Part shown: positions 1 to 32,399 of the stretch, piece by piece
How positions within the stretch are numbered: position 1 is the first letter of the stretch
Layout: each line of letters begins with the position of its first letter
Assembly (NCBI GenBank): GCA_946965045.2
Contig: OX337240.1
Span: 2,542,001-2,606,000 of the forward strand
Length of the DNA stretch: 64,000 nt
Origin: Epithemia pelagica
Lineage: Eukaryota > Protista > Bacillariophyta
Direction: 5' to 3'
Notes under the pieces: generated by a model
Databases searched by the model: none
The model's input: the letters and a program-made list of their open reading frames with translations, nothing else
Told to the model about the DNA's origin: nothing
Program-made: the position numbers and the translations under genes

Positions 1-3
1 AAC

Positions 4-3029: not shown

Positions 3030-3086
3030 TCGGAAATTGTGAACTTTGCACAAGGCGATGTTATGATGTTCGGTGCTTATTTGGTG
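3030..3086 (+). pseudogene. livH: Bacterial LivH-like (branched-chain amino-acid ABC permease) micro-fragment
   Basis: Translates SEIVNFAQGDVMMFGAYLV, matching the LivH signature (E/G)xxNFA(H/Q)G(E/D)xxMxGAY. Flanking codons do not continue a LivH sequence. Confidence 0.6.
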
Positions 3087-3145
3087 TTACCAAAGTGGAC
3101 ACGATTAAAGCCTTTGTGCTCGAATGACGGGACAATGCGTGTGGT

Positions 3146-3900: not shown

Positions 3901-5534
3901 TCGTCGTCGTCCATTTCATTGTTGCTGCTGTCAGCTGTATGATTGTCGTCGTCTTGATGATACACGTCGACGAGTTCGGGCCGTTCGGCCATTTGGACTT
4001 GCGCCAACTGTCAAACCGTTCTTCCGCCGACGACAACAAGACGACAGTTCGACCCAGATGGCGGAGCCGGAAGTCGTGGAGACGCGACTCCATTACGACT
4101 AGTAGTAGTTGTAATAGATACCATGGGATTCTTGGCTGGTTGTGTAGTAGTAGTGGCAGGGAACGAAAAAAATGGACACCACCGGTCCAAATGTTCACCG
4201 ACAGTGGAAGGAGCAGTGCCCATTCGGCAGCAGCCTCCGTCTTGACGGGTCTGGAGGACCGAGCCGTTGGTTGGTGGACAGGCTCGATTCCAGTATCCCA
4301 CACACCAAAAACTGCCTCCCAGCAGCAATGGCAGCAGTTCCGCCATGTCCATCCTCCATGCCGACTGGAAATGGTGGTGGGAATCATTGGCCCGGCACTA
4401 CTACGTGCCCCTTGCGAGTGCCAGAGCGGTGTGGGTGTTGCCGGTTGGCCATTGTTGTGGTTTGGGTCGCAGTTGTTGTGGTTTGGGTGGGTGAGTGGGT
4501 GGTTGGTTGAGACTTTATATCGTAGTGTCTCAATGGTCCTGCAACTTGTCGGGCCGTCGTCATCATGCTATCCAGTCGTCTTGGTTGCTGGATGCAACCA
4601 GGGGGAATCGCATGACTGGGGGCCGTTGTACGTACAGTCTTGTTCCTGAAGCAACATCATCATCACCCATTTCTCTACCACAGCCGAGTGTCGGTTCCCA
4701 AACGCGAGGCTTGTTCCAATCCTGTACAGTCCCGATCCAAGACTCCAGCCATGGGAGGCATGGTTCTGGCAGACATTTTTGGATCCACAAGGGTCTCTCT
4801 TGTGGTCGTGTAGAGTTGTTGTGCTTCTTGTGGGTCGTTTCGAATAAGGTCTACCAGCAATAATACGATGGTGGCGAGATTTCTGGCCATCACGACGGGT
4901 GCTGCTTACAGAAATGTCGTTTGTTGATCTGGTGAGGAGGAGGAGGACAAGGACGGCGGCGCATGATCTGACATCACCATCCCACAACCGCAGAAACGAC
5001 CTGTTGTGGATCGATCAATTCCAAGGTCGTCGAGGTGAACAGAGAACACCATGAAAGAGAGGAATCTTTGTACTTTTGTTTGTGTTTCTTGAACAACATA
5101 ATTGCATGATGTCACGGCAACAGATACTGAGCGGCGTGTCATGTAGTCTATGTGCGATTGCCTCGCGTTCGTCCGTCGGTCCCTCCATGGCCAGGGGCGG
5201 TCCGATGCATGCCCTGGTGGCGAGAGCAGCGATTTTTTTGGTCGGCACAGTTGCGGGAATACACGCACAGAACACTGTCGGTCACATATGATATAAAAAA
5301 GATTCACAAGGGTATCTTTTTTGGCGTGTGTTGCTCTCCAGCCCATTGAATAGAGATCTATCCCTCTCGTTCGACATGTCTGTATCATTCAATTTTTGTT
5401 TGTGGTTGCTGTCTGGAACAAAGAGACACACTGGTGGTACTCCAGACGCCTAGTGAAAAGATTCCCCAGGAAGAAGACCAATCCAACGATTGTTTGTACA
5501 AACGAGTGTTTGAAAGAAGAAGAGCAAAATCATA

Positions 5535-8500
5535 ATGGTCTTGACTCATGAAATTGTGGATGGTGTGGAAGCTAAATTAAGCATTCATGGTGTCTTGGAA
5601 AAGACCAAGTACACCTTGTTTTATTCCATGGTGGGCGTGGTGTGCCTCACCATTTTGATATCCTACGGCAGTGTGGCCTTGGTCTTGGAAACGATTGCTC
5701 GCAACAATCCCAATTGGAATACCTGGCAACGCTTTGACACATCCAATAATGCCTTTCGAAGGCCTTCCACAGCCATTTATGTACAGGACATGGTGTCCCA
5801 GAACATTCCCTTTGCGCAACGGTGGTTTCAAGATTATGTTCGGACTACAACTACTAGCTCCTTGCAAAATGATGATAGTGCCCTCTTAGTCAAGGTGCCC
5901 TGGGATCGTCCCACAACAAATTCTGTCACCAAGCACCAGGAGGGTCCTTTCGAGCAGGAAGGCGAGGTGTCGGAATCCACCTGTTTGGTCAATTTCCTCT
6001 CCTTGGTGCAAGCAGTGTTGGTGCAAGAACCAGACCCAGCAGACACCAGCATCAACCATACTACCAGCACGATCATGACAAATCCAGAGTACGTTGAGTT
6101 GGTATTGGAGCACATGGGGTTGTGGTACAGCATTCCCATTCGTCGCGCCTTGTCGGCCTACTTGAACGAACCCCAACCCTTGGAACACTGGTTTCTGTTT
6201 CCTAGTGGCAGTATCATTGCCAACAATCCCCTCTTGGATTGTTGGATGGGCATTGTGGGGTTGCCCGAATTGGCCTGTGCGTTACAAGAAAGCACCCATG
6301 AGTGGGAAGTTTTGCGCCAAGCTGCTGCTGCTTTTTCGGATGCATCGTCCTCTTCACCTCTGCGTGAATATATTCTCTATGTGGTTCATGTGGCGGTGGT
6401 GCTGGAAACCTTGATTGCCGGTGACAATAAGGCTAAAGTCGCTGCTGGCTTGGTCCAGAATGTAGATACATTGGAAGAAATATTTTCCATTTTGCAACAG
6501 GATCAATGGAGTGCCCTTCAAAAACAACAGCAGCAGCAGCAACAGTCCTCTACCAAACCGTCCAACTACCACCCAACCACGGTCCAACAAGATTTCCATC
6601 GCTATGGAAGAATGTTTCAAACCATGATTCAAGAATCCGTAGGACCAACCATGTCGTCGACATCGACCTTGTTCACCATGAATATACTACAAACCATGCA
6701 ACAACAAGTCGCATTGGGCCATGTGGACCAAGCCCGCGTCGGATTGACCTTGGCCACGACTCGAAGCAATTCTACAACAACAATGGGTTTTTCTCGTCGT
6801 TCCACCGAATGGACCAATGGGTACACCACATGGAGTGTCGTCCATGCCATTGCCACTCAACCCTTGTATCATCTCGTCCAATTCCTCATCCCATCCGTCA
6901 CGTGTTCAGCTTCTTTGGCAGCAGCGTCGTCGGAATGGCTCGATCGTCACATTGTGGTTGCCGCCTTGGCCCATATGATTGTCCCCACTATGAATTCATC
7001 CCTCGCGATACTGGGAAATTTCAGCCAACCCCTTCAGCAGTACATACTGGAAGAGGAATATAATTTGCCCGAGAGTCGATGGTCCGAGGCACAACTTTTG
7101 GGAGCGCTCAATACCGAAACGATTCAGTTGTCAAGTCCATCCAAGAGCACTGTAGAAGAACGTTTGTATGACTGGTGCGGTGAAAGATGTCATTACCGAA
7201 ACAGTGGTGGGCCATGGAGATTTACCAAAGATTCCATTCCTTTCTTGACCAATTTGTCCGATGAGCAATTTCGATTGTACTATTCCATGTTTTTGTGGGT
7301 CACTGGTGTTTTGACGGGCCTAGGATCCAAAGTCTTTGTCTGCCTCTTGTATCTGCGTACGTGGACGGCCGACCGTGAAATGTGGTGGCGGTACGTCCAA
7401 TTAATCTTTCCTCTCTTGGTCACAACTGGCTTGGCCATGGCTGCCCAGCGGGATTTTTTGTCACTTCTGTTTATGGTGGTTGGCTTGTGGAAGTTTGGCT
7501 TTCCCGAGGTCATTATGTATCTCTACGTCGGCTTTTTGGATGTCAAGGCGCCTCGATTACTGCGAGTTGCAGACGTTTTAAATGGTCTAGGAACCATTAT
7601 TCATCACAGTATTACTGTATGGTTTGCCGCCATGCAGCTGGGAGGCGTGTTTGTGCCGGACCGCTATGTCATTGCCTGTACCACTGTACCCTTGATGCAA
7701 CATTGGTTTGTTTTGCTGGCCTACGCCAATCCCAATCTTTACAGTACCATTGAACTCATCTTGGAAGTCTACTTTGAATGGATTGCTTTCTCGTACATGG
7801 GACATTACTACTATGCACAGGGACTTGCGGGCGCCATGGCACCGGCCACCATGGTCTTGGCCCATTGGTTTTATTTGGCGGCCGCCACGATTGAACTCTT
7901 GGCTCCTTCTATGGAAGATGAAGACGACGATGACGATGCGATTTCCGTCAGTACCAACAATACACCCTTCCGCAATATGCATACACGAGGCGTTCAAGTA
8001 TTTGCCCGTCGCAACTCGAGCGATCTCGAGTTTCGGCCGCCCTCCAAAATGGAAATTCGCCGCAGCACGTCTATAACAGCAAACGAAACGGACGTTAGTG
8101 GAACAGTGGACCTATGGGGAGGACTCAGCAGCAGAGAGTTGTATCAAGACAGCACATCGTTTTTGCGAGGAGGATCCATCAATGATGATGATGGCTTTGA
8201 CAATGGTCCCGACCATGCAAAGCTCGGCACCAGTCCGATGCGTCGTCGCCACACTTTCCCGAGCTCGGGATTGATGGACCAGGAAATGAGGTCCTTGTCA
8301 CTTTTTAGCAGCAAGCACAACGAGGAATCAAAACAACCAACAATCCCTCTGTCTCGTCCCGGGAAAAGTATCCTGGTAAGGAAAAATGATGATAACCCCA
8401 GTGTTGTAGGAAATGGTGAGATGAAGAACATTCCAGCGGGGGTCCATGTCCTGGATAGTCCCACGACAGGTTGGACTAGCAGCCACGACAATCTCCTCAC

Positions 8501-8783
8501 CCCAAATACTCGCAATAAAGGAGACCAGGAGGACGAAACTGTAAACCGTGCCGTGGAGAATAGTCCCTCTTCGCCTTTTCCGGGTATTGAGCAAAGCAAC
8601 CGTCAACATGATAACACAAATACAGAGCTTCTCGCCACCACCCAGACGAGTAGTCCCGATCAGGAGGTTGTGAGCAAAATCAACAGTCCATTCCAAGTAC
8701 TCAAAGAGCGCAATGAATATACCACCAGGAACCAGAACAAGGACTCACCCGCTACAACTTTGGAGAGGCGTTCCTTATTCTAA
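5535..8783 (+). CDS. Large multi-pass membrane protein of unknown function (1082 aa)
   Basis: Uninterrupted long ORF with an N-terminal TM helix, a cluster of hydrophobic helices (LWKFGFPE, TIIHHSITVW) and a disordered C-tail. Confidence 0.75.
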   Translation: MVLTHEIVDGVEAKLSIHGVLEKTKYTLFYSMVGVVCLTILISYGSVALVLETIARNNPNWNTWQRFDTSNNAFRRPSTAIYVQDMVSQNIPFAQRWFQDYVRTTTTSSLQNDDSALLVKVPWDRPTTNSVTKHQEGPFEQEGEVSESTCLVNFLSLVQAVLVQEPDPADTSINHTTSTIMTNPEYVELVLEHMGLWYSIPIRRALSAYLNEPQPLEHWFLFPSGSIIANNPLLDCWMGIVGLPELACALQESTHEWEVLRQAAAAFSDASSSSPLREYILYVVHVAVVLETLIAGDNKAKVAAGLVQNVDTLEEIFSILQQDQWSALQKQQQQQQQSSTKPSNYHPTTVQQDFHRYGRMFQTMIQESVGPTMSSTSTLFTMNILQTMQQQVALGHVDQARVGLTLATTRSNSTTTMGFSRRSTEWTNGYTTWSVVHAIATQPLYHLVQFLIPSVTCSASLAAASSEWLDRHIVVAALAHMIVPTMNSSLAILGNFSQPLQQYILEEEYNLPESRWSEAQLLGALNTETIQLSSPSKSTVEERLYDWCGERCHYRNSGGPWRFTKDSIPFLTNLSDEQFRLYYSMFLWVTGVLTGLGSKVFVCLLYLRTWTADREMWWRYVQLIFPLLVTTGLAMAAQRDFLSLLFMVVGLWKFGFPEVIMYLYVGFLDVKAPRLLRVADVLNGLGTIIHHSITVWFAAMQLGGVFVPDRYVIACTTVPLMQHWFVLLAYANPNLYSTIELILEVYFEWIAFSYMGHYYYAQGLAGAMAPATMVLAHWFYLAAATIELLAPSMEDEDDDDDAISVSTNNTPFRNMHTRGVQVFARRNSSDLEFRPPSKMEIRRSTSITANETDVSGTVDLWGGLSSRELYQDSTSFLRGGSINDDDGFDNGPDHAKLGTSPMRRRHTFPSSGLMDQEMRSLSLFSSKHNEESKQPTIPLSRPGKSILVRKNDDNPSVVGNGEMKNIPAGVHVLDSPTTGWTSSHDNLLTPNTRNKGDQEDETVNRAVENSPSSPFPGIEQSNRQHDNTNTELLATTQTSSPDQEVVSKINSPFQVLKERNEYTTRNQNKDSPATTLERRSLF

Positions 8784-9712
8784 TGGGCTTTGGAACAAGC
8801 GACACCTCAAAAGAGGCGCTGATTGGGCCTGACTGTCGTGGATGAACAGAATGGGGATCCTCAAGGATGTCACAATAACATGTTTTCTCCCAAATAACAA
8901 CCCACGGAAGCGTAGTGACCAACGAATGGCTAGTATCCCTAATCTTGCCACGCAGACCACCGGCGATTCAGCGAAATTTTGACTCCCACCATTGCAACCA
9001 ATCAACAACCGGAGCAGATCCGATTACCATGGTCACAATAACATGTTTTCTCCCGAATATCAATTGATCTGTTCCCATGGGAACCGAATAACCAACCAGA
9101 TGCGAACACGCACGTTTTTCTCCGATCAACCAACGTCTATTTGGCATGACAGTGAGACCCATGTCGTGGTTGGACTCGCACGACCTTCTTCTCTGTTCGA
9201 TAAGGGCAAGCCTCTGTGGTAGTACCATCGACATACGATTGTGATATCCTTGAGACTCGCAGCAGGGACCTCCGGGATTATCGCTGTCCAACCAAAATCG
9301 TCCTCCAGCTCCACGACACACGTTCGAAAACATGGTAACGTGTAGGAAAAGAGTCTGCCTTATGCTGCTCCCACTAGTGGCACTTCGTGGAGCTACAAGT
9401 CTATGGAGCGGGATCAGAAAGTACCATGCTCTACTTCTTCGCTACATCGTCTTTTCAGTTTCAAAACAGATCGTAAAAAGCCCATCAACCAAACAAAATC
9501 ATTCTCAGTTGCTGATGACTCGTTGTTGACCAACCATGTCAAGAGTTTCAATGAAATCTCTGAACCCCGCGGGTTACAAGAATGTTAATTTGAGACAAGA
9601 GCCCCGTCAGTGGTCATAAAAATCCGAAATCCTTCGTCAGTTTGGTGCTCCATCTTCTCATAATTTCCAATCGAGCAAACGATCAAGCAAGCTTCTACCT
9701 TAGTCTACGATC

Positions 9713-10739
9713 ATGTTGTCATTCTCTCTTTCATTCCTCTCTGTCTTTGCGTTGACCGTTGTCAACAGTGTCTCTGCCACGGCAGCAACATGGAAGGCTT
9801 ACTCGGTAGCCGCTTGTCATGGTGTTGATTTTAACACCCTTTCCTCCGCGGAACAAGAAAACTTTGCTGCAGCCATACAGACTTCGTTCAACCGAATCCA
9901 CGGACCCAACGAAGTCCTTTGGGACACGAAATGGGACGCTGTGATTCCGGATGCGTTCCCAGGTTATTCTGAGACGCGCTTGGGTTGGCCTGAAGGGTAA
10001 GACTTTCTCGCCACCTCCTGTGCTTACATGACACGAAGAAGCATCATCTTACCCTTGTTGATATTTTTGTTATCTTTCTTGACGATACAGCGGTGGATCA
10101 AATTCCCATCTTGAATGTCACTTATGCCCGGATGACGACGACAACTTTGACGACACCCTTCCCCTTTCTTTTTCACAAACATTCAAGCCGGATCTCGTTG
10201 AATGGGCGGCAGATCTCACCACGGAACTCCAGAGTAGCGGCCTAACTGGTTTGAAGGAGGCCACCGCTTGCTCTGTCAAAATCGACTTTACGCGAGTTGC
10301 AATGGTGGACACGGCTGTTCGTGTGCAGTGCCAGAACGTTGACTGGGGTGTTCTGACGACATCGGAGCAGCAGTTTGCGGCTTCCGAGATACAAAACTCC
10401 TTCCATAACGTCCATTCTGTTGATAAAGACATGATGCGACTCCACGACATGAAGAGTGTTCCGGAAGTTGGAAAAGTCAACTCGTTGATTGACGTATTGA
10501 TTGGTTTTGCGTGGCCTTCGAAATATGGTTATTTTACTGGAAGCTTCTCGGCCGACGTTGATGCCAAGGTAGATGTACCAGCTGCGACCCTACGACGCAC
10601 GAACACCAAAGATGTGATGGCGTTTTATCTTTGGGAAACCGAATTTGAAAAGCTTCTTCACAGGGGACCCTATTCTGCTCTTTCTCATGCCGCCGACTGT
10701 CGCATTGAAATGAAAGTTGTGGACAGCAACATGGATTGA
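9713..10739 (+). CDS. Secreted protein with CxxCPDDD motif and two internal repeats; intron 9997-10090
   Basis: Signal peptide MLSFSLSFLSVFALTVVNSVSA. The GG|GTAAG...GATACAG intron joins ORF 9713-10000 in frame to ORF 10251-10739 via GGSNSHLECHLCPDDDD. Confidence 0.8.
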
Positions 10740-19654: not shown

Positions 19655-19994
19655 TCGCGCCTTTTTCCAAACAAATCCTGGAAAGGTCTTCACAGGTTTG
19701 GTTTGGTTTGCCGTAAGGAACGGCCTGAGGCCGTTCGACCAGGACTCACCCTTCCGCTAGGGGGTACGTCCTACTGAAATTGTATAGTGTTTCTAGCAGA
19801 GGTATGTCCGGAGTCTTTGTTGTTTTCCCACCCCCAGACCCCCTTTAGCCTGCCGGCTTACCCGACTCCGTTCTTTGAACTCAGTCGAACACAACCAATA
19901 GTCACTTCTTTCTTGTGCATGACGATTAACAGTCTCAAGTCTTTTGTTTTGTTGTTGTGTTGTTGTTGCTGAAATATTATTAGTTCATTTGACC

Positions 19995-21995
19995 ATGTCA
20001 GACCCTGCCAGTAAATCAAACATGCCTGACACGATGGAGGAAACAGATGCGACGCCCGTCACCCCTGTCAGGAGATCTCCCGATATGGCTGCAGTGGTAG
20101 AAACCATGGCTTCATTGCTGGCAGCTCCTGATGACAATGCATCCGCCTTGAGGACTGATCTTGAGGCCATGTTCTCGTCGTGGAAAGTCACTCGTTGGGA
20201 AGACTTGATGGCTGTAAAGGACACGGACGTGGAAGATTATATTGCAGACAAAAAGCCTGAACAGCTCTCCCCCCTTATCATCGAGAGGCGTTTGGGTTAC
20301 CTGGTCCGGTATGCCAAGCTTGATAAGCCCTTGACTAGCGCTCTCACGATGGCTTCTGTGATTCGGGAGGTGGATAAACAGCAGCAACCGTCGACGCTGT
20401 ACAACTTGGTGTTTCGAGCCATCCAATCGGGCAGCTCGGGTGTGCCCCACATCCTTGAAGATCTTGAAGAGTTCCCCATGGCGGAATTAAAATTGTTGCA
20501 AGTGCAAGAGTACACCAAGCCGCTGTATCGTCGTCTCCATTTACCTCGGAGGAAGGGAGAAATCCACTACAGCCGCGAAAATCAGGTGCAGGCTCATTTG
20601 GAGACTTTGGTTACTGACGTGATTGAAAGCTGCAATTATGGCCTAACAACAGACACAGAAGCGGCCTTGAACGGACTGAAAGTGGATATTGGCTTTCTCC
20701 GGGACGACAACGACGACCTTTGTGGCACAATGGAAGTCAAACAACCATATAGAAGATATGCTCAACCTCCGGATCCAGATCCTATGACCCATCCGAAGGT
20801 TGTCACGCAGGTGTTATCTCAGATGATACCACTTCGTACCATGTATGGAGTGAAGAACGTGTACGGCATTCTTTCTACGTACTCATCATGGCGATTCTTT
20901 CGTTGGTTGCCCTCCGAGGAGTATGAAATTCGTGCGGACGAATCATTGGAAGAGTCTGAAATCACAAAAAAGCTGGAAAACCTTGGTATGTCTGATAATA
21001 AAATTGAGGAGGGCTCGTCGGTCGTAGAAGCGTCGCAATATCGTACGCCCCGTAAGGCAAGGAGCGGCACCTTGGGACCTCGCAACTCTCCTCCGACGTC
21101 ACCCAAGCCATATTGCGACTGTGATCAAACGGAACAAGACGGAGACGAGGATCAAGAATCTGATGGTGACACTACGACTAAGCGTGGCATACTATATGCA
21201 TCAGAGGTAATATCAGACGCTCCAAAGGCACTGCGAGTTTTGGCGTGGGTGTTGGGAGAAATGTACCGCTCCCCGAGGCAGTACGTCCCCTCCCATCAAC
21301 GCGATTTCCTCTATGTTGTCAAGAAAGGAGAGGACGACATGGTAGGGGGCTACGAACGCGTTCCACACGACGCGGAGTTTTACAAAGGACGCATGCCACG
21401 AGTGGATGTTGAGAAACTGTATATCTTGGAAGAACTCGGCCACAGGTCGCATGGAAGAGTCTTTCGTGCAATGAGTAAAGGTGGCAATCTCTGCGTGATC
21501 AAGTACTTTGTCAAGTCCCAATACGCTCTGAACGAGAATGGCAAACGCGTACAATTTGATGCAAGAGCTGCAGCACAGAAATCTGTTTCGTATTGGAACG
21601 CAGTATACGCCCACAACTGGCTACCAGCGGCAAGATTTGGGACATGGGGTGGGGGCGATGCTATCCTTATGCCTGATTTGGAGAAAATACCAGTGATGGA
21701 GGCAGAAGAGCGACTTTTTGTCATGAACAAGCTGGAAGAGACGATGAAAGAAAGGTTCCACCGGAGGGGCATCTGGCATGATGATCCGGCATGGCGCAAT
21801 GTTGCACTTGTTCGCAACCAACTTGGTCGCATTACAAAAGTCTGCATGATTGATTTGGAACCTGCCCGTATGATAGAGAAGGTTGAATCAGACAAGTGGG
21901 GGGAGTTTGAGACAATGTGGGGGGAGTTCCAGAAGGTGCTCGACGCAGATTGGGACAATTTCAAAGCTACACTATTGACGGGAAGCTCACACTGA
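19995..21995 (+). CDS. CRN-like effector: N-terminal domain + PD-(D/E)xK REase + kinase-fold domain
   Basis: KVDIGF..GTMEVKQP (REase D..ExK), VYGILSTYSSWRFFRW, then kinase-like LGHRSHGRVF / HDDPAWRNV / IDLE. The ATG at 19995 is preferred over the upstream TTG. Confidence 0.75.
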   Translation: MSDPASKSNMPDTMEETDATPVTPVRRSPDMAAVVETMASLLAAPDDNASALRTDLEAMFSSWKVTRWEDLMAVKDTDVEDYIADKKPEQLSPLIIERRLGYLVRYAKLDKPLTSALTMASVIREVDKQQQPSTLYNLVFRAIQSGSSGVPHILEDLEEFPMAELKLLQVQEYTKPLYRRLHLPRRKGEIHYSRENQVQAHLETLVTDVIESCNYGLTTDTEAALNGLKVDIGFLRDDNDDLCGTMEVKQPYRRYAQPPDPDPMTHPKVVTQVLSQMIPLRTMYGVKNVYGILSTYSSWRFFRWLPSEEYEIRADESLEESEITKKLENLGMSDNKIEEGSSVVEASQYRTPRKARSGTLGPRNSPPTSPKPYCDCDQTEQDGDEDQESDGDTTTKRGILYASEVISDAPKALRVLAWVLGEMYRSPRQYVPSHQRDFLYVVKKGEDDMVGGYERVPHDAEFYKGRMPRVDVEKLYILEELGHRSHGRVFRAMSKGGNLCVIKYFVKSQYALNENGKRVQFDARAAAQKSVSYWNAVYAHNWLPAARFGTWGGGDAILMPDLEKIPVMEAEERLFVMNKLEETMKERFHRRGIWHDDPAWRNVALVRNQLGRITKVCMIDLEPARMIEKVESDKWGEFETMWGEFQKVLDADWDNFKATLLTGSSH

Positions 21996-22809
21996 ATGCG
22001 CACACAGGGACCACTTTCCTTTTTTGGCCCACGTCAAACTCTTCACGTGATTCGAGCACCACGGACCAATACTGTTGCGCCTTGAGATTGCACCAGATGA
22101 GTCTCGATCTTTTACCTCTACTTCTTCAAAAGTACAGGCAGAAAAATCCCTATAGGCGCGTTCTCACTGCATCCTTCTTGAAGGAACGAAAAGTGATGGA
22201 GGTCAAGTGTGGTATTCTCTGAAGGAAATTAAGGACAGAGATGCTTCCCTTCCCCACTTTATACATCACGGAAAGGATATTCCGTTCCAGCTATGCGGAC
22301 TCTACCTCTACGACGGACCTCCTGACATGGGGAACACCCGAATGGTTGCCTTCTCTTACCCCAACTCGGGTTGGTTTGAAACGATGAGGAAGGGCCAGAG
22401 CATCACGTGCGACTCTACATGCCCATGTCGACTCTGTCTGAACTCAAGGAAGCCGTTTATGTGCTCGGTCTAGAAGTGTCCCCAGAACAATTGCTTGGAA
22501 GGATTGAACTCTTCGGGGGCACTGGAGGGCAAGGAAGCCATCGATGCCACTTTGGGCAAGATAGAATCGTTGGATTACGTGTCAAGGTGCTTCGAGGGAA
22601 AGGTGGACTTGGAGAATGTCGTCCATCGCCTAATGCACTACGTCAGGGACGATGCCGACTGGAGGGATAAAAAAATTGAAACCGGCTTCCAAGATGGTCG
22701 CTTCGATGATACACAATAAGCTCACCCAGAGTCTCGACTCTGAGCGGCAAAAGCTGGACGGAGCGGGCAAGGCTGGTCCGTTTCTCGCCTGGCTCTTTGA
22801 GGAGTTTGC
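20856..22809 (+). repeat. Segmental duplication, copy 2 of the CRN cassette
   Basis: Matches 1-2194. It carries a private 47-bp insertion (21990-22036, flanked by a TCA duplication) and stops abruptly at the bacterial DNA. Confidence 0.95.
22037..22809 (+). pseudogene. Truncated copy of the CRN NTPase-REase pseudogene
   Basis: Same frameshifted motifs as 1396-2194; cut at FLAWLFEEFA by the bacterial insert. Confidence 0.75.
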
Positions 22810-24278
22810 CAGCCACTGACGCACTTCACGCGCTTCATCTCGCTCATCGGCCGCAATCGCTGGGACATACCAAATGCGATCATAGGTTTCGCTCAGCGTT
22901 TGCAGGGCGGTTTCGGTGTCGGCCAAATAGAGGGTTGGATAAACGGGCAGGGTGGTAAACGTCAGCTCCGGCCGGGTCTGATAATGATCGTGCCCCAGCA
23001 TCACAATCGCATCGCTGTAGACAACCACATCATTTTCACCAGCCGTTCGTTCGATAAACCGTACCAGGCTGCGGATGTCGTCTTTGGCCACAACCGGGTT
23101 GTTGTAGCGGGTCACGAGCGAACTAATTGAGGCAGCCAGCGGGACTAAAATCGCCAAAAGCTCAATTGGCTTGGCCCAGCTGAGATTTCTTTTTTGATGG
23201 GATGTAAGTTCCCAACCCAGCATGATAGCGGCCACGACCAGCAAGATATAGCCGATATTGCCCAGCATGATGTGCCGGATCCCTTGATACATCGGCTTAA
23301 TCATCGATGCGAAGAAAATGCCAACGGCCGGGAAAAACAGGGAGAGGCCAAGCAGAGCCGCTAGGATCGGGCTTCGTTTTTGCCAGAGCAGCACCAATCC
23401 GGCTAAGACGACAATCAAAAATCCCCACCAAAGTGTTGAAAAGAGCCACGGGAGATTGGCCGGGGTAACACCCATTCCATATCCTCGGACAAGGTCGTTA
23501 AAGATGGTGTCAAAGGGGACAAATTTAAAGCCTCTTTCGGCCGGGGTAAATAGGCGCGGAATTAGGGGGGGGGCAAAAGCGGGATAACGGCCAGTGCGCC
23601 CGCAACGCCTCCGATCACGAGCCAACGGCCCAATCGAGTGTGTCGCCAGAGCAGATACCCCCAAATGAATCCATGACCCGCAATGTAAAACACCGCTGCG
23701 ATATGGGTCCCAATGGCGATCAGGGCTAAAAATAGATAAATCCCAAACCAACGCCAGATTTCGGCCGGAGAAGCGTTCTCTTCGGCTTGCTTGACGGCCA
23801 AGAGCACAACCAAAAGCAGAAGTAGCCCCTCGACGTTGAGCAAGGTGTACATACGTGCTTCTTGGGCGTACCAAAGCAGAAGCGGATTGATGGCTGCCAG
23901 CAGCCCGGCCAAAATGCCGGCCGTCTGGCGGCCGGTCAGCCGCGTTCCAAGCTGAAACATCAGGGGGACTGAAAGTACCGCGAATAAAGCGGACGGAAAG
24001 CGAAACGCAAAATCGCTATCGCCAAAAATCTGTCTTGTAAAGTGGATGAGGAGGTAGTAAACGGGGAGGTGGGTGTCTTGTGTTGGCTCCCCTTGGATTG
24101 TGATCCGGTTGCTCAAGATTTCGGGAATCGAATAGCCAGATCTTAGCGGTGTTAAGGCTTCGTCGATCCAAAAACTAAAATCGTCGATTTGGTGTAGGGC
24201 AAGCCAGAAGCTCAGCCAGATGATCCCGATTAGGCTGAGCTGTCGTATTAGTTGCCTCTTCCCGAAAAATGACAGCAT
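22810..24278 (-). pseudogene. Bacterial GT-C / glycosyltransferase family 39 (PMT-like) membrane protein, frameshifted and 3'-truncated
   Basis: FSFWIDEALT, DTHLPVYYLL, AFRFPSALFAVLSV and LLWYAQEARMYTL. A frameshift in the G9 run at 23565-23573 joins IPLLPP to LIPRLF. Cut at EVRQWLA (22810). Confidence 0.85.
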
Positions 24279-24342
24279 TCTGCCAATTTTATATCGCCCC
24301 CTGCAAAAGTCGATGAACGTAGGGTAAGTGTTGAATTTAAAC

Positions 24343-25131
24343 TTAAAGGTTGCTGGCGTCTTCTGGTGTTTCTTCCTCTGGGGGATCGAGGTAGATGTCA
24401 GGGATTTCGAGGTTGTTGTCTCGGCAGAACTGGCGCACCAGCGCGTTTCCGCGCGTGGCCGATTTGACGATCCAGTCGAGCTTAACTTCGTGCGCATCCG
24501 CTGTGCTCAGTTCCCACGGCACATCGCTTGTCCGCAGCCGATGAGTAAGTTCCTGAAAGCTGAGGGCTGCGCTGACAGAGATGTTAAGGCTTTGGGTAAA
24601 GCCGTACATCGGGATGGTCATGAAATGGTCTGCGAGATCATGGGCTTCTTCAGAGAGGCCAGTCTCCTCGGTGCCAAAGCAGAGGGCCAGCGGCCGGTCG
24701 ATCGGTACGTCATAGAGCGAAGTCGCACCCGGCCGGAGCGAAGTCGCCACAACCGTATAGCCATCCGCTTTGAGCCGGGAAATACAGCTCTGGGTCCCAC
24801 TTGGTTCACCGGGGGCATGGGGGATCGGTGTGCCGTCTTCGGCCCATTCTCCGTAGCGATGGAGGGTGAGCCAGCGTGAGGCACCCATCGCCACTTCAGG
24901 ATTAATTTGGTACTCGTTTTTGTCTTCGATAATGTGAACGTCTTGAATGCCAAAGATGTCACACGAGCGCAGAACGGCGCTGGCGTTGTGGGGCTGGTAG
25001 ATGTTTTCAAGCACGGCCGTAAAGTGACGGGTACGATTAACGAGGATTTGATCGATTAACTGGAGCCGCTTTTGAGTTATAAATTGGCTCATCCAGTCGA
25101 TGAGCGGGCTGGTGTGGGATGCGTTCAACAT
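24343..25131 (-). CDS. trmH: TrmH/SpoU-family RNA 2'-O-methyltransferase (bacterial), ORF intact
   Basis: VLENIYQPHNASAVLRSCDIFG, ALCFGTEETGLS and IPMYGFTQSLNISVSAA are the SPOUT motifs 1-3. Confidence 0.9.
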   Translation of the reverse strand: MLNASHTSPLIDWMSQFITQKRLQLIDQILVNRTRHFTAVLENIYQPHNASAVLRSCDIFGIQDVHIIEDKNEYQINPEVAMGASRWLTLHRYGEWAEDGTPIPHAPGEPSGTQSCISRLKADGYTVVATSLRPGATSLYDVPIDRPLALCFGTEETGLSEEAHDLADHFMTIPMYGFTQSLNISVSAALSFQELTHRLRTSDVPWELSTADAHEVKLDWIVKSATRGNALVRQFCRDNNLEIPDIYLDPPEEETPEDASNL

Positions 25132-25247
25132 TGAACCGATTGTAGCGAAATTGTTTCGGGGGGCGAAAAGCTTACAATTGGGTGGCAATGCGCCGTTACT
25201 TAAGCCCCCCTAATCAAAAAACAACCGAATCGGGTTAAAATTGCCCT

Positions 25248-25662
25248 ATGATTATTAATCTCTCTCCATCCCCCTATCCGAGACGCGGGGGGCCTAGCTG
25301 TATGACGCTCATCTTGGTCTTTTTCGCGGCCGGGGCTGGGATGTATTTGTTTTCTAACGTTGAGCAGGTGGTTGACGTGATTGTCCCTACGGTCACGCCT
25401 GAGCCAACCCGCTCGGCCGAGTCATTTGCCTTTAGCGCCGCTCTTTACAATCGAGATGGCGATACGGAAAAAGCGATCGATTCTTATCGTAAAGCGATCG
25501 CGCTTGATCCCGATAATTCAAACTACTATATCGACCTGATTAATTTGCTGACAATTGAGGGTGATGCCGAAGAAGCGCTCGAGATCGCAGAGCAGGTTAG
25601 CCTGATTGCCCCAGACGATGCGGAAGTGCTTGTTGCCGTTTCATCCGCCTATCTTACACACG
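25248..25662 (+). pseudogene. Bacterial TPR membrane protein, 5' part (split by transposon)
   Basis: TM helix plus VIVPTVTPEPTRSA linker, then TPR 'GDTEKAIDSYRKAIALDPDN'. It ends at SSAYLTH, where a purine-rich eukaryotic sequence begins. Confidence 0.85.
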
Positions 25663-28600
25663 AAAATAGGGGGGGGAGAAGGCAGAGGAGAGGGGGAGAG
25701 GAGGGGGAGAGAGAAGGAGAGAAGAAGGAGATTCTGTAAGTCAGATTCCTTCATGAAACCGATCCGCGTATTGCTCGCAGTCTCACGTTTGTTTCCTCTG
25801 ACGTATGAAATGCTCTAGGAAGCTCCAAACTTCCCTCAGAGGGGAGAAGGCACTTCCCCTCCAAAACGATTAAGCCCTTCATGTCGTTTCAGCACCTTTT
25901 TGTTATTGAAACGACATTCTACACTGGTACAATCCTCCCAACCATCCGATGACCTTTCACGTGGTTCTACGTAGCATGTGATGAGGCGTATCCAGTCTGT
26001 GCTTCGCATCACAATCGGAACTGCTTGCACCTTGCACAAGATCTTGTCATAATTTTTTTTGCTACAATGTTACTCACTACGAATTTTTCTTTTTGTTGTT
26101 TGTCATGCAGGTATTCAGGTCAATCAAGAGAATGAAGATGGTGCCTTGTTCAAGGCTCGTTTGGGGCAGCGTCGGTCATGGGGTGGACGTCCTTTCCCTC
26201 GTTCTACGCAGTACTTCATGTACTTGACGCAACAGAACTGGGTTTGGACACGACGTGGTGGTCCGAAGGGAGGAAAGGTGGGCATGCATCTCGGGACGGA
26301 TTGAAGACCACCCCAGCCATGGGGATTGCAGTGGAATGCAAAGGGGTATTGCTGTTGATCGGGGAGTGTTGTTGGCCGTTGCTGATTTTGCTTGTACGGG
26401 TTGACAGGTTGGTTTTTCTGTCTTGTTGTCGTTGTTGTTGTTGCCGATTGCAGTACCACCAACCCATTTGCTGTTGTTGCCATTGCAGGTGTGCTGTTTG
26501 CTGCATTTTGAGGCTCTTTGTGTTGTTGTTGTTGATCCTGCACTGTCGCTGCTGATTGATTTGTTGCTGCCATCGTTGTTGTTGGTAAGGCTTCGCTGTT
26601 GTTTGTAACCTTTTGCTTTTTGTTGCTGGTGTTGTTCTCATCCAAATCGTCGCTCTCTTTTTCTTCTCCCTCTCTTTCCTTTCTCTTATTGCTACTGATT
26701 GCCTGTGCTTGTGCTGTTTCTTGTTGTTGTGTCTGTTGTTGTGTTTCTTGCCGTGTCTGTTGTTGTGTTTCTGGCTGTGTCTGTGGTTGTTGTATTTTGG
26801 CTGGATTCTCCTCGCTGTCCTGTTGTTGGATTTCATCTTCGACCTCTGACTCCTCCTCTGCCAAACCCAACAATGGAATGGACGTGTCATGCGGCAACCT
26901 CTTCTTGTTGCTCGCACCTTTTTCGGCACTGGCATCGATCGTTGAGTGGATGCTTTGGAACTTGTTGCGTGATTTCTTTTCTCGTTTCCAGGTACTCGGA
27001 GAAAAACCGTTCTCCTGTATCTTCTGGAAGCTTCTCAACCTCTGGAAAGGGAGGGCGAGAAGCTCCAGACATCGAGGCAAGTATATTGATCATGTTTGTT
27101 TTGCATGCGTTACCAAAACTCACCACCATTTCCCATCCTGCACGTTCTTCTTGAGACTTCGTCATGATTCTCATCTTGTGACGAATTGCCCTGTTATACT
27201 GGGCCGTGCCTGCCAAATTCAAAGCATCTGCGAGACTTTCTCGCATGCCACAGTTGGCAAAATGCGTCAAATTATCATGAAAGCTCTCGAGCTTACTCTC
27301 TCCTCTCAAAGGTACGTACTCCACTAGCTGGTTGCTTGATCTTGGTGATGGAGGTATCTCACGATACATTTTCTCCACGGGCAAGGGATCAGCAAGGAAC
27401 TTTGCCTTCTCTTTACAGTTTTCCAGTGCTTGATGTGTTTCGGCCGTAAAAAGAGGTTGATTGGAGTGTGGATCCAATCGGCCTCGTGCTGGTGGCTTGC
27501 CAGGAGTGGAAGTGCACTTGTATTTGCACTTCCACTCCTCCAACTTGAGGACAATCGTATCGCCACCCCGAATAATCTTCCGTAAGTTCTTTGAGTACCT
27601 CTGTCGAAAGGTCTTGGTTCCCATCATTTCACTGATCTCTTCGTCTGTGTATTGTTTCTTGGAGCTTGACATGGTTCCATTTTTCAAAGAACCAACAAGT
27701 TTCTCCAAGTCTTCAGGATGGTACTTGTAGATCGCATCCAACAAATCCTTCATGGCTATCCCAAAGTCAATGTGCCGTTGTCTGAGCGTCTTGGTTATCC
27801 TCTGTATGAAATGGAAAAGGCCAAGACGGCCCTCCAAGTCATCAACCAACAACAACCAAAAATCCTTGCCACAAGGCCATGTGTCAGAGTACATGGCCTT
27901 GGGGCAAAACCCGGTACGTCTCAGCACTTGTTCCGCAGCATGTGCAAACTCGAGTGCTGATGTGTCGTGCACTAACACTGCACAAGCAATTTCTCCTGCC
28001 TCTGTTGCCATGGTCCACATTGCAGCTGCATTGAGGCGTCTTGGATAATTTTTCACTACCTGGTGGGTGTGGTCGTGAGCAAACATGTGCTGGCATCTAA
28101 CCCCTTGAATCTCTCTTGTGTTTCTCTCATTGTCAGACACCATCCAGGGTTGCCATTCGGAGCTTGCTCCATCATCATATAGCTGGCGGATTGTCTCGCC
28201 TAAAGGTGGGTAGCGAACCAGAAACTCACCATCCTTTTGCACGTAGTCTTCTGATTCTTTTCCTGTAGCAGCACAATAAGAATAGTACCTCATTGTCTTG
28301 TCTTCATAGCATGTGTTGATTCCTTCATATAGCATCCGACTGATGTAATCCCCATTGCCATAGGTTACCATTGATGCTTCCATTATCCTCGTAGCATCTT
28401 CAGCTAGATGCGATGTTCCTCTAGCATACTTGGGTTCCACTGGGTAACACATAGCCATGTAGGGAGGCAGTCGTGCGAGCAATTCTCCATCATTTGCATA
28501 GAAGGCAGCCGAGCACCCGGCACACTTGTATCCCATAAGTATTGCATACTTTGGGGGACCAGACATGGCGAAAATGGGGAAAAGGGACTTGTTTTTTGAA

Positions 28601-29749
28601 AAGTTCGATCGCGTACGCTGGAGATTACCCCGGCAACGAGGACAACGCAAGTGGTTACTGGGGAAAAACAGCTCCCAATCAGCAACCAGGAGTTCCTGTC
28701 CCACAATCGAGTCGTACAAAGCACTCGTGTTGTCGGCAATGGGGGGTACATTAACGGTAATATTAGTGAAGAAAGGTTTCAAATTCTCAACACAACGCTT
28801 AGAACCAAGGCACGTGTCGGTCACATAACTCGCCAACGCATGCACAGCACGTGGGACATGCACCTCCGTAGGTACTGCTGTCACACGCATAATTACCTCA
28901 AACTTGAAATCTTCGGCTGTTGGAACATACGCGCCTTCCTCGCCACCAACGGTAGAACTTTCCGTTGCCAAAGTCACACTAGTAGATTCTGTGTTTTCAT
29001 TTTCAGCCCCTCTCTTTGCGTTTTTCGACGTGCAATTGGGACGAGGTCGCATGAAAACGTCCACTGCCTCCTTCGTAACATTGGAGGCGGACAGTTTCTC
29101 ACCACTGGTAAGTGGTTTGCGAATTGCTGCTGCATGGACAGCCTGGGCCTTTTCTGAGGCCACCACCTCTGCTCCTCTTCCATCGTTCATTCCCTTGCCC
29201 CTTGTTGTTGTGTTTTTGCTGCATCTGGGGTGGTGAGGGCGATGAGGGATGGCCATTCCTCTTGCCTTGGCCCTGCAGATGGGGCAGTCGATGTCGGACT
29301 CAAAGATGACCGAAAGGTCCATCTTTCTCCAACCTGAACGCTTCTTCCAACTCTTCTTTGGCCAACGAGAGTACTGATTTCCGTATCGTTGCGACTGTGG
29401 CCCCATGGCCTTGGCCGCTGTGAATTGTGCTGCAGAACTCATGATCTCTATTTGTTATTCTAACTTATTGAAGTGTATCCTCTTTTCCAGGCTTCTGACC
29501 ATGCTCAAAAGGGTCATGAGATGGTCAGAAGAGGACTTGTCGCAATGGTCAACTTGGCCATGCCATGGGCGACCGTGAAGGACCGACCGGATCGGCTGAT
29601 GGAATCTTCCCTCCATGTTTTTTGTCCGTGATTCGATGGGTTCCCGGGACACGGTAAGACACTTGTAACGACATTTGTTTCCTAAGTGATTTTTTGTGAA
29701 ACGACATTTCTAACCCAATCATATTGCTGCCTTTTGAAACTAACACCCA
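25663..29749 (-). mobile_element. TIR-less DDE transposon, Dada-like
   Basis: Bounded by a direct repeat ACACG (25658-25662 and 29750-29754) inside the TPR gene. No terminal inverted repeat. It carries one large transposase-like gene. Confidence 0.7.
26124..29442 (-). pseudogene. Dada-like transposase with a +1 frameshift near 26920
   Basis: Zn finger CPRC..YKCAGC, then FAHDHTHQVVKN, MYSDTW, RLGLFHFIQR and RGESKLESFH, matching the pattern I recall for Dada (DxT, YxD, DxxH, RGxxxLExFH). Removing one A in the run at 26919-26923 joins ORF 26887-29442 to ORF 26124-27080. CxxC..HxxxC motifs at both ends. Confidence 0.65.
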
Positions 29750-29963
29750 ACACGGAGAACGCTTGAATCAATACGAGCGGGGCCGAGCGAGCCATCGGCA
29801 AAAATCCGAACTTGGCCACCTTCAGGCTGGGGCGCTGATTCAGCAGGATCGAGACAACTTTCAGCGTTCCAACGAGCTAACCGATTTGGCCATTGCGCTC
29901 GACTCTCAAAGCGAGGTTGTTCACTATTACCGTGGCGTCGTGCTTGAAACGCAGGGGTATTAT
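29750..29963 (+). pseudogene. Bacterial TPR gene, 3' continuation (right part of the bacterial DNA)
   Basis: HGERLNQYER..AERAIGKNPNLA (shifted frame)..AGALIQQDRDNFQRSNELTDLAIALDSQSEVVHYYRGVVLETQGYY. This is TPR-like and continues ...YLT|HGER in frame across the element. Confidence 0.8.
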
Positions 29964-29976
29964 TGAGCGACGAGTG

Positions 29977-31473
29977 ATGGAGATGCTACCTGCCTCCGGA
30001 ACGGTTGTTACTGTGCAACACGTGGAAGAATCGGGCTTGAGAGCGGAACCTACTATTCGCTTCATGACAAGAGCTCAACACGCAACGCTATGGGCGGAGC
30101 TCGAAGCTGCGAGTTGTCTTTTGGAGGGCCCTCCTGGTGCTGGAAAATCTACTGCCGTCTGGTTTTGGCTCACACAGCGAGTCCTACGTACGGGCGAGAA
30201 AGCGCTCTGGTGTCACTTCATGAAACTTGGCTTTTGGGTGGTGCGTGTTATTAGCCGTGGAGAGGATGGCAAACTCACTTTCAAGAAAATCAATGCTCGT
30301 GATGACCCGTTCGCGCATGTCTACGATAATGAAGAAAAGATAGAAATATGTGTGGTCGATGGAGTTACACATGACAACAAAGAAATGGCCGGCAAGAGTT
30401 GGAGATCGTTTGGCTTCGATTCAAGCTTGTATAAGCACTGCCATATGATCTGGATTTCGAGTCAACAGCTGGTCGTGCCACGAGAACATCTACACGCTGT
30501 GAATATGAAGTACCTATCTCTTTACTCATGGACAGAGACCGAAATAAATGAATACGCAGCTACCTTTGATGACGGAATGAAGCGAGCATTTGTAGATGAG
30601 GTTATGGCCGGAATACCCCAAAATCGCTCTTTGCCTTCGGCCACAATTGACTTTGAACAGGCTTGCACGATCAAAAAGTACTTCTGCGGGTGTTCTGCAA
30701 GGTGGATGTTTGGGATGAGCTTGAAAGATGCATTGGAAGACATAGAAATCCACCTCTGGAAGGTGAATAATGTCCAATTGATTCAAAATGGGTTGGCTGG
30801 AGTGCGTGGAATGACTGCAGTGAACCACGTTTTTGCAATGTATCCATCTAACAATTCTGATCGGCTGGGCCTCTTCAAAATCTCGAGCTCGTTCATGATG
30901 GAGAAAATATCGGAAACGGTTGGTTTAGAGGCAATTCGAGCGATGTATTCTAGCCACTGGGTGCAAAATAATCCTTCTGTCCATGGGTTTGTTTTTGAAT
31001 GGGACATTATCACGCAACTTCAGAAGAATAATTCGCTCACTCTCACCGTGGGCTCTTTGGAGTCAACTTGGACGATAACAAAGACTGTTCGCCTTGAAGA
31101 GTTCCTACGCCATGGTATAGCTGATGATGAACAATTGCTGGTCCTCCCCGAAAAATGGAATCACCCTGAATATGACGGTTTGTATATATACAAGGATGGA
31201 GATCGACATCTCCACTTGGTGGCCTGGAATGCATCGGAGGCTGCCACTCACTCTGGAAGTGTTTCCAAACTGCTTGTTATGTTGGAATCGCTGAGTCAAC
31301 GCGAAGCGGAGTCAATCAATTTTGATACAGTCAGGTTCCTGTTTCTTGTTCCACACGAGAGACTGCTCAATTTCAAGATGCCTCCGAGTTCGCAATGCCT
31401 CCTAGCAAAGCAACAGCTTACAGCTTGGTCATTTGGAGGGTTCGAAGTTGGTGGTACGGCTCGTACCCAATAG
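29977..31473 (+). CDS. CRN-like P-loop NTPase + C-terminal REase protein (probably 5'-truncated by the bacterial DNA)
   Basis: Walker A LLEGPPGAGKS, Walker B ICVVDG, GCSARWMF, GFVFEW and NHPEYDGLY. The first 28 codons of ORF 29893 lie in or at the edge of the bacterial DNA. Confidence 0.75.
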   Translation: MEMLPASGTVVTVQHVEESGLRAEPTIRFMTRAQHATLWAELEAASCLLEGPPGAGKSTAVWFWLTQRVLRTGEKALWCHFMKLGFWVVRVISRGEDGKLTFKKINARDDPFAHVYDNEEKIEICVVDGVTHDNKEMAGKSWRSFGFDSSLYKHCHMIWISSQQLVVPREHLHAVNMKYLSLYSWTETEINEYAATFDDGMKRAFVDEVMAGIPQNRSLPSATIDFEQACTIKKYFCGCSARWMFGMSLKDALEDIEIHLWKVNNVQLIQNGLAGVRGMTAVNHVFAMYPSNNSDRLGLFKISSSFMMEKISETVGLEAIRAMYSSHWVQNNPSVHGFVFEWDIITQLQKNNSLTLTVGSLESTWTITKTVRLEEFLRHGIADDEQLLVLPEKWNHPEYDGLYIYKDGDRHLHLVAWNASEAATHSGSVSKLLVMLESLSQREAESINFDTVRFLFLVPHERLLNFKMPPSSQCLLAKQQLTAWSFGGFEVGGTARTQ

Positions 31474-32399
31474 ACTTTTTTTTTTGATTTGCGGTACAAA
31501 CGACCCTGTGCGCTTTCAAGCCTTTATAGGCACTAGTTGGCATTTTGCCGTTAACGAGTAATCATTGTGTTATTATTATTATCATCTAGAAGAAATAACG
31601 AATAATGAGTAGGGCCAATATTCCTTTTCCTCTCTTCTTAGCTTTGAAGTCTACTTCCAAAGTACAAGTACTTCGAAATACTTGAGTAGTCTAGACGGCC
31701 GTAGGCCAGACGAACATCAATCCAAATTCCACGTGGAGCTTTTGCCGCGATGACGCAGACTTGAAGACCTCTCCATCATCACAACATTTCAAACTCTCTT
31801 CACAGGAAGCTAGCTAACTATCTGCCGTTTCTTCATACCATTGTGAAAGAGAAAACGAAAGCCTGGAATACGATCCATGACAAGAGCCAGTGATTGAGCT
31901 CTGCAACAACAAAAGTACAGAGAAGCACGACCACCATGCCGACAAATGATTTTCGACAAGCCGATGCGGCATCAAGCATGCGACAACTTACCATGGGCAT
32001 GCTTGTCTCTGATACTTTCATGACGAAAAATGTCGCAACGACCAGCTCAAGAACTGTTCCGCAAATATCCAACACCTGCTTGTTTTCGGCTCCCGTCGAA
32101 GAACAACAAGATGTGTGGCAAGATCCCGATGCGCCGGAAGTCGATGTGGAAATTTGTAATTTCGATATCATTCAACTTGCCTTACCAAAAACATCCAAGG
32201 TTCCTCGACATGGCCTTCACTACGCTTGCTTTTGAGCAATGATTCTTCGTTGGAATATACGAAAGAAGGCGGATAGGATGTTCCAGCGGGTTTCGTCGTG
32301 CGGCTTCTTCACAACAATTTGACTCTTCTCTCTAGATTCTCATCATCATATCCCAGGAAATAAGTGCCACCTCATGCTTTTGTCCTTTTCTACTCGGCT

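Follow-up and report, generated by a model that had tools for sequence, protein, structure and literature searches.

A block of bacterial genes, split in two by a host transposon, lies within the 64,000-nt stretch of Epithemia pelagica DNA analysed here (GCA_946965045.2, OX337240.1; hereafter the window, to which all positions refer). The window sits ~1.0 Mb into the 1.41-Mb contig ctg1347l of assembly ERZ21939226, and its bacterial DNA occupies 22810-25662 and 29750-29963, ~3.1 kb in total, which together make up one collinear piece of Chloroflexota type. A listing of open reading frames (ORFs) combined with Pfam scans places three bacterial-type reading frames within 22.8-25.7 kb, belonging to a glycosyltransferase, a trmH gene and a TPR gene (Table 1); a short ORF at 29724-29966 carries on the TPR reading, and an 851-aa minus-strand ORF with no good Pfam match lies in between. 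GC content is 53-54% in the bacterial pieces as compared to 48% in the whole window, and GC at third codon positions (GC3) is 0.60-0.64 in the bacterial genes versus 0.49-0.55 in host genes. Neither the transposon nor the bacterial block has a second copy within the window. An earlier interpretation of this locus, drawn from the letters alone (the sequence-only reading), had set the boundaries of the bacterial DNA at 22810, 25662, 29750 and 29963, and these hold almost to the base.

Origin of the bacterial genes

The three genes keep the arrangement seen in their bacterial relatives. In donor-type metagenome-assembled genomes (MAGs), a TPR gene on the minus strand is followed by trmH and a large PMT_2 glycosyltransferase, both on the plus strand; the window has the identical order and orientation, with TPR transcribed divergently from trmH just as in the donor clade, and this three-gene synteny was found at five of the loci compared (L001, L004, L006, L008 and L009). 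Among 5.8 billion proteins, the closest relatives of the window trmH are proteins from MAGs labelled Chloroflexota, Anaerolineae or Promineifilaceae at 61-66% identity; the GTDB species genomes return the same relatives at 65% identity at most, and a search for a closer donor in JGI metagenomes gave a best trmH identity of only 51%. In a maximum-likelihood tree of 54 proteins, the window trmH falls with 100/100 support into a clade of 11 Chloroflexota-type MAG sequences, as the sister lineage of the remaining ten and with a long branch (0.43). We considered decay after the transfer as the source of this branch length and rejected it; the branch must mostly represent an unsampled donor lineage, because an equal amount of post-transfer change would have wrecked the ORF.

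Based on these trmH relatives, the tree clade, the shared gene order and the TPR and glycosyltransferase alignments given below, assignment of the donor to the Chloroflexota is supported at the level of phylum, and at the level of class the donor was probably of Anaerolineae type. The sequence-only reading had named an Anaerolineae-like Chloroflexota donor, which the trmH matches, the fully supported clade and the common three-gene order bear out; likewise, the bacterial origin of the block, as it had claimed, is evident from the trmH phylogeny and the synteny with Chloroflexota MAGs. We know of no endosymbiotic link between Chloroflexota and diatoms, and nothing in these data points to an endosymbiont as the donor. 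One of the syntenic loci, L009 (JBLIMP010000060.1), comes from a MAG binned as Cellvibrionaceae and yet holds a Chloroflexota-type TPR/trmH/glycosyltransferase locus, its TPR being 79% identical to that of the window; the contig was probably binned wrongly.

The trmH ORF measures 281 aa from a TTG start and 262 aa from the ATG at 25131. It matches PF00588 with 109.2 bits (cutoff 29.7) and contains all three SpoU motifs (NASAVLRS, FGTEETG and IPMYGFTQSLNISVS), by which it is predicted to be a SpoU/TrmH RNA 2'-O-methyltransferase. For the neighbouring glycosyltransferase, tblastn with the enzymes of L004, L006 and L008 (880-964 aa) placed their residues 2-262 at 24338-23571 and their residues 260-523 at 23577-22792, the final bacterial residues being ...REVRQWL, which end at 22810. 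The remnant matches PF13231 (PMT_2) with 39.6 bits against a cutoff of 26.1, and PF02366 (PMT, CAZy GT39) stays below its Pfam cutoff (21.3 versus 22.7 bits). Its domain content thus predicts a GT-C enzyme of the PMT_2/ArnT-like kind, in place of the GT39 label that the sequence-only reading had attached to it. The sole frameshift in the glycosyltransferase is the loss of one nucleotide in a run of nine G at 23566-23574, where ten are expected; with one G added, the translation stays in frame (PLLPPP-LIPRLFTP). To the left of 24500, contigs derived from the reads of three sequencing runs differ in offset by 1-2 nt, and the length of this G run may vary between samples.

A host transposon inside the TPR gene

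The TPR gene is interrupted at one position. Tblastn with MAG TPR proteins placed residues 1-138 at 25248-25661 (74-84% identity) and residues 146-225 at 29754-29963, such that both pieces align to the same bacterial proteins, the second beginning at ~aa 139/146 and ending at ~aa 225 of ~423. At the break, the window reads ...TATCTTAC ACACG at 25650-25662 and ACACG GAGAACGC at 29750-29762. Across the insertion point, eight of eight TPR homologs read ...AYLQNGERLAEIGERDLALNQYERAIQSAERAIGKNPNLA.AYALQAGALIQQ..., and in a multiple alignment the rejoined window gene reads AYLTH/GERLNQYER where the homologs have AYLQN/GERL. As the gene rejoins at the residue expected from the homologs, the transposon insertion point is a single position of the bacterial gene, with the frame kept. 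The initial proposal, in which the TPR gene stops at 25662, resumes at 29750 and regains its frame (AYLTH/GERL) once the element is excised, is therefore correct.

Downstream of the element, the second TPR piece has lost 30 nt in frame adjoining the transposon junction, as seen in three translations and in DNA alignments to L001 and L004; further on, losses of 11 nt and 10 nt first disrupt the frame and then restore it. None of these three deletions is a homopolymer error, and an alternative placement of the 30-nt deletion as 21 + 9 nt leaves the target duplication unaffected. A 7-residue gap in the tblastn output was at one point a candidate for sequence loss at the transposon site; we rejected it in favour of the multiple alignment, in which the junction is exact and the 30-nt deletion lies just downstream. 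The sequence-only reading had reported frameshifts in both the glycosyltransferase and TPR genes: those in TPR stand, as 11- and 10-nt deletions, while the glycosyltransferase has only the one in its homopolymer.

The ends of the inserted element are fixed independently of the TPR argument, because four other full copies (L022-L025) share them, aligning at ~97.8% to the window over 25661/2-29748/54. These copies sit among ordinary eukaryotic genes (for example ATG9, a protein kinase, HSF and SRP68). Flanking direct repeats measure 5 bp in the window, 7 bp at L022, 6 bp at L024 and 6 bp with one mismatch at L025; no clear flanking repeat was found at L023, and a search for terminal inverted repeats on the element found none. 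The element protein has a 95%-identical relative, representative of a 51-member cluster whose contigs, 0.15-1.6 Mb long, all come from one ENA assembly. The protein belongs to DUF6729, a family recorded so far only in eukaryotes, whose feature and fold neighbours are MULE and KDZ transposases. The element thus has the traits of a transposon, namely multiple copies, discrete ends common to five copies and a target-site duplication; indeed, the presence of a eukaryotic transposon with a target duplication inside a bacterial gene, the central point of the sequence-only reading, is confirmed by ends that match four further copies and by ACACG on both sides. The window copy has 71 substitutions of its own and its ORF is broken (851 aa versus ~1,100), as compared to 99.1-99.8% likeness among the other four, which suggests that it is an older insertion or possibly one of a different subfamily. 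The 851-aa ORF has no exact match on record, since the gene caller set its boundaries differently.

Two further observations concern this element. In a marine sediment metagenome run (X5), near-identical transposon pieces occur at 25830-26848 with 1-3 differences per 150-300 nt and a depth of 2-3.5; within the compared stretch 24500-30499, X5 has transposon sequence only and no bacterial DNA. Marine sediment is probably a habitat of the host or of a close relative. Separately, one low-depth contig of run X4 (described below) skips 113 nt at 26582-26696, in the glutamine-rich 3' part of the transposon gene; the skip reflects either copies that differ in length or splicing, its ends being non-canonical as listed.

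Outer junctions and host neighbours

The left junction lies at 22809/22810, exactly where similarity to a host paralog ends. Two host segments ~20 kb apart are near-duplicates by blastn (20856-21970 versus 1-1115, 99.2%; 22034-22809 versus 1408-2194, 97.6%), spanning the 3' half of a DUF5898 gene and the 5' part of the next gene, and the second copy ends at the bacterial DNA. This segmental duplication (1-2194 / 20856-22809) is recent. Past 2194, the paralog continues into a 264-aa ORF (2037-2831) that is absent at 22809, where the glycosyltransferase, read backwards, follows instead. At the right junction, 29963/29964, the alignment of bacterial homologs ends at 29963, and that of the host paralogs L028 and L029 begins at 29965-29967; upstream of this, the two paralogs have a further 51 bp in common that the window lacks. 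Both outer ends therefore break mid-gene, as first described, with the glycosyltransferase cut at 22810 and TPR at 29963.

Table 1. Features of the bacterial block, the inserted element and the adjoining host genes, in window coordinates
Feature	Position	Strand	Evidence or remark
Host flank gene, 683-aa ORF with C-terminal DUF5898	19944..21995	+	Pfam PF19250, E 3.2e-9, above cutoff; 99.2% duplicate at window 1-1115
Truncated 5' part of host gene	22034..22809	+	Paralog 1408-2194, blastn 97.6% over 789 columns, ends 22809/2194
GT-C glycosyltransferase remnant (predicted), distal piece, ~aa 260-517 of ~963, cut at 22810	22810..23577	-	tblastn 41-45% identity to L004, L006, L008
GT-C glycosyltransferase remnant (predicted), N-terminal piece, aa 2-262, PMT_2	23571..24338	-	Pfam PF13231; tblastn 46-48% identity to L004, L006, L008
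Complete ORF of predicted TrmH/SpoU-type RNA 2'-O-methyltransferase	24343..25188	-	Pfam PF00588, E 2.3e-31
Bacterial TPR gene, first piece, aa 1-138 of ~423	25248..25662	+	84% identity to L001 TPR, gapless; TPR Pfam families match
Target-site duplication ACACG, left copy	25658..25662	.	Direct sequence reading
Host multi-copy transposon-like element, 4,087 bp	25663..29749	-	~97.8% identity to L022-L025 across exactly that span
Element ORF, 851 aa, DUF6729-family protein	26887..29442	-	~1,100 aa in intact copies
Target-site duplication ACACG, right copy	29750..29754	.	Direct sequence reading
Bacterial TPR gene, second piece, to ~aa 225, cut mid-gene at 29963	29750..29963	+	tblastn 62-67% identity to first-piece homologs
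Host flank gene P0173, intact, 498 aa, P-loop NTPase-like	29977..31473	+	Upstream region cut 12 bp before ATG

The host gene on the right, P0173, is full-length with respect to paralogs of 484-503 aa (80-86% identity) and to a homolog among the MMETSP transcripts. A P0173 unit of ~1.6 kb, comprising the gene with ~70 bp upstream and ~45 bp downstream (window 29965-31491, L028 5932-7536, L029 5932-7529), also occurs, at 88-89% identity, on other contigs and in a further assembly, ERZ25042306; the surrounding DNA is unrelated, which gives the gene the look of a mobile or retro-copied one. No empty site was found at the paralogs of P0173, the DNA upstream of L028 and L029 being unrelated. Both flanking genes had been labelled as Crinkler (CRN) genes by the sequence-only reading; this is not reflected in Pfam, where only DUF5898 in the 683-aa ORF is significant and nothing is found in P0173 or in the paralog of the truncated gene. 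No Crinkler N-terminal domain was found in the flanking genes, a search that did not extend to CRN-like C-terminal modules.

One further stretch of apparently foreign type lies near the paralogous copy. Window 3030-3086, ~200 bp beyond the undamaged paralog of the host gene truncated at 22809, translates on the plus strand as ...VSEIVNFAQGDVMMFGAYLV..., which we take to resemble a motif conserved at the N terminus of bacterial LivH-type branched-chain amino-acid ABC permeases, though it is too short for a family search.

Each end of the block also coincides with a breakpoint of a host duplicated unit, consistent with end-joining of several fragments or with trimming at a later time, and the 3.1 kb seen today may be what remains of an event that was larger or more complex. 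Taken further, the block could be all that is left of a bigger, multi-fragment insertion of foreign and host DNA, or could have moved together with host segments by duplication or capture. The coincidence of both outer junctions with host breakpoints and the LivH-like snippet at 3030-3086 speak for such a patchwork history; we nonetheless consider it rather unlikely, given that all three genes keep strict collinearity with donor-type genomes, nothing inside the block being rearranged, and that the bacterial block occurs just once in the window.

State of trmH and possible transcription of the block

Four runs from one organism, representing three samples (S1, S2 and S3), hold 64-84% of the sampled words of 21500-26500. 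Read-derived contigs were compared to the window over 24500-30499, and a 31-letter rule was applied in counting a junction as bridged. In sample S2 (run X2), the 1.19 kb of 24500-25690 differ from the window by 6 single-nucleotide polymorphisms (SNPs; ~0.5%), four of which lie in trmH: two synonymous, one K90T and one nonsense. The last of these, 24679 G>T, changes Cys170 from TGC to TGA directly ahead of SpoU motif 2 (FGTEETG), and the stop allele is carried by the only contig at the site, at full depth. Because a second sample has a stop codon in trmH, the intact reference gene is not conserved, and its open frame is best read as not yet struck by a disabling mutation. Any importance that the sequence-only reading implied in describing trmH as intact is thus not borne out by the stop at codon 170.

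Run X4 differs in character from the others: it consists of 39 Mb of contigs, the longest being 19.6 kb, with nearly no transposon sequence and very uneven depth, and looks like an RNA library. A 2,148-nt contig of X4 (~22780-24927, depth 446) crosses from host into bacterial DNA, runs the length of the glycosyltransferase remnant and ends after the 3' two-thirds of trmH; nothing aligned across 24928-25690, although coverage holes in this run prove nothing. If X4 is RNA, this contig may represent read-through from the truncated host gene, 2.1 kb into bacterial DNA, rather than a trmH mRNA.

These data bear upon a domesticated transfer, in which trmH would be a working host gene under selection and the remainder debris. 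An unbroken ORF of 262-281 aa with three SpoU motifs, the synonymous nature of two of the four trmH SNPs and the high-depth X4 contig over 22780-24927 would all agree with that. We regard domestication as very improbable, however, since the TGC>TGA change at codon 170 removes motifs 2 and 3 in S2 at full depth and in the only contig there, and the X4 contig ends at 24927, without the first ~87 codons of trmH, and crosses the glycosyltransferase remnant to the host junction, which fits read-through better than trmH mRNA. Furthermore, the GC3 of trmH is still bacterial (0.635), and no intron or other eukaryotic signal was seen in trmH.

Read depth and junction coverage

The bacterial DNA is sequenced to the same depth as the host DNA beside it. 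In run X1, depth is 121.8 over the bacterial part, 112.6-119.8 over the host flank and 2,500-5,000 over the transposon, the latter being 20-40x the ~120x of bacterial part and flank; in X2, the corresponding values are 149.1, 136-142 and 3,000-10,000. Depth in both runs accordingly agrees with the chromosomal location that the sequence-only reading had advanced. The right junction (29963/29964) is bridged by contigs of both X1 (144/150 letters) and X4 (82/424 letters). A unitig of 2,909 nt in X1 (2,908 nt in X2) covers 24500-25690 and, by its size, starts at ~22782; it would reach 28 letters into the repeat on either side, the behaviour expected of a 31-mer unitig at a repeat.

An assembly chimera or contaminant, that is, a stretch of a co-sequenced bacterium joined to host contigs by the assembler, would account for intron-less bacterial genes of higher GC in a diatom culture, such cultures being seldom axenic, and the run that holds the block best is probably the assembly's own data; we nevertheless find it scarcely credible, as it would have to explain a host transposon of ~50 copies with exact ends and a target duplication within a bacterial gene, host-flank depth in two samples and contigs of X1 and X4 that cross the right junction, a second sample in which the structure recurs with 0.5% SNPs, the cutting of both bacterial end genes exactly where host paralog similarity stops, and a sediment metagenome run that has the transposon without bacterial DNA in the compared stretch.

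Discussion

Here we have described bacterial DNA that, in our assessment, very probably represents a real, old and non-functional lateral transfer from Chloroflexota, split by a transposon and decaying, and is not an assembly chimera. At least 3.1 kb of a Chloroflexota (Anaerolineae/Promineifilaceae-like) chromosome would have reached the nucleus of a probable marine diatom, carrying the divergent pair of TPR and trmH followed by the GT-C glycosyltransferase. End-joining at a chromosome break may then have inserted this piece, with the glycosyltransferase and TPR genes cut mid-gene. The truncated host duplicated units on both sides would reflect multi-fragment repair or, alternatively, later trimming by rearrangement; the end-joining, the way in which the DNA entered and the timing of the outer truncations with respect to the transposon are all inferred. 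A host transposon of the DUF6729 family would afterwards have entered the TPR gene, making the 5-bp duplication.

Since then, the block has presumably drifted neutrally, which would account for three TPR deletions, the homopolymer frameshift, the broken transposon ORF and, in another sample, the trmH nonsense allele. Signs that it is not maintained by selection include the two cut genes, the transposon insert, the 30-, 11- and 10-nt deletions and the codon-170 stop in the trmH of S2; the block would then be without function, the reference trmH remaining open only for want of elapsed time. The succession put forward by the sequence-only reading, in which integration was followed by transposon insertion and decay, survives when set against the junctions, the read depth, the target duplication and the deletions. 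Neither of the conditions that it had named as refuting it applies: the two TPR pieces share their bacterial homologs, and read-derived contigs show host-flank depth over the bacterial DNA and cross the right junction.

Several points weigh against this account of a decaying transfer or narrow what can be drawn from it. The glycosyltransferase frameshift, being in a homopolymer, could be either real slippage or a sequencing error. Reads across the junctions, which the sequence-only reading had named as a check, are in hand for the right junction; on the left, coverage of the outer junction and of the transposon junction amounts to 28 letters on the repeat side, short of the 31-letter rule, and for the outer one it follows solely from the size of the 2,909-nt unitig. 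The right transposon junction is absent from the listed read-derived pieces. All of the runs that hold the block belong to one study, and X1, which is identical to the window over the bacterial part, is probably the sample behind the assembly. Finally, no close donor is available (best trmH identity 66%), and the bacterial part therefore gives no measure of the time since transfer.

Non-functional bacterial DNA in a eukaryotic nucleus is of a known kind, and the present case is unusually well proven by structure. Nuclear insertions from Wolbachia into arthropod and nematode hosts are multi-gene, mostly pseudogenised and sometimes interrupted by host transposons. In termites, bacterial pseudogenes acquired by horizontal gene transfer (HGT) have been described in nuclear genomes (10.1101/2025.03.16.643567). 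Donors in the Wolbachia and termite cases are symbionts associated with an animal germline, in contrast to the likely environmental or surface-associated donor of the block described here, which resides in a unicellular alga.

Closer to hand, DNA of the diazoplast, a cyanobacterial endosymbiont, has been integrated into the nucleus of Epithemia clementina as so-called NUDTs, which are decaying and are unexpressed even in the case of a full-length gene (PMC11383321). The NUDTs and our block are alike in being raw bacterial DNA in a diatom chromosome, with host read depth, donor base composition and truncated, decaying genes. They differ in that the NUDT donor is a permanent endosymbiont, the NUDTs retaining 98.4% identity to their source and forming mosaics of 8-42 distant fragments, whereas the block comes from Chloroflexota, with neither a known endosymbiotic link nor a close source genome, and is collinear and interrupted by a transposon (PMC11383321).

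Surveys of HGT in diatoms have centred on expressed genes that are under purifying selection and gain introns, with young transfers found near transposable elements; retention across strains has served there as an argument against contamination (Vancaester et al., 10.1101/2020.01.24.918219). The block likewise represents a transfer from bacterium to diatom. Unlike those genes, it is truncated, carries a nonsense allele and shows no sign of selection, a stage that gene-based screens miss. As to how such DNA might enter, conjugative delivery from E. coli to diatoms, where it is kept as episomes, is an established laboratory system, and a route of entry therefore exists (PMC4411287); the block itself, by contrast, has no plasmid, relaxase or oriT genes and nothing that points to conjugation. 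Our literature search found no description of non-functional DNA from free-living or associated Chloroflexota in a diatom chromosome.

Claims of gene transfer in protists are often doubted, as contamination and phylogenetic artefacts are hard to exclude and only assimilated genes are usually seen. At this locus, contamination is excluded by structure, owing to the transposon within a bacterial gene, the paralog-defined junctions, the host depth and the polymorphism between samples. The block thus documents the "dead on arrival" majority of transfers, which theory predicts and gene-based surveys overlook, and offers a snapshot of bacteria-to-alga transfer prior to any gene being used, as well as material for estimating how often bacterial DNA enters the algal germline and how fast it decays. 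More tentatively, and as a conjecture that we entertain rather than favour, this diatom lineage may repeatedly take up and fix raw environmental bacterial DNA, in which case undomesticated transfers of differing ages, dated by host transposons, would be present. If this is true, a single organism would make it possible to measure directly at what rate and by what mechanism bacterial genes become domesticated in an alga, and how the process starts.

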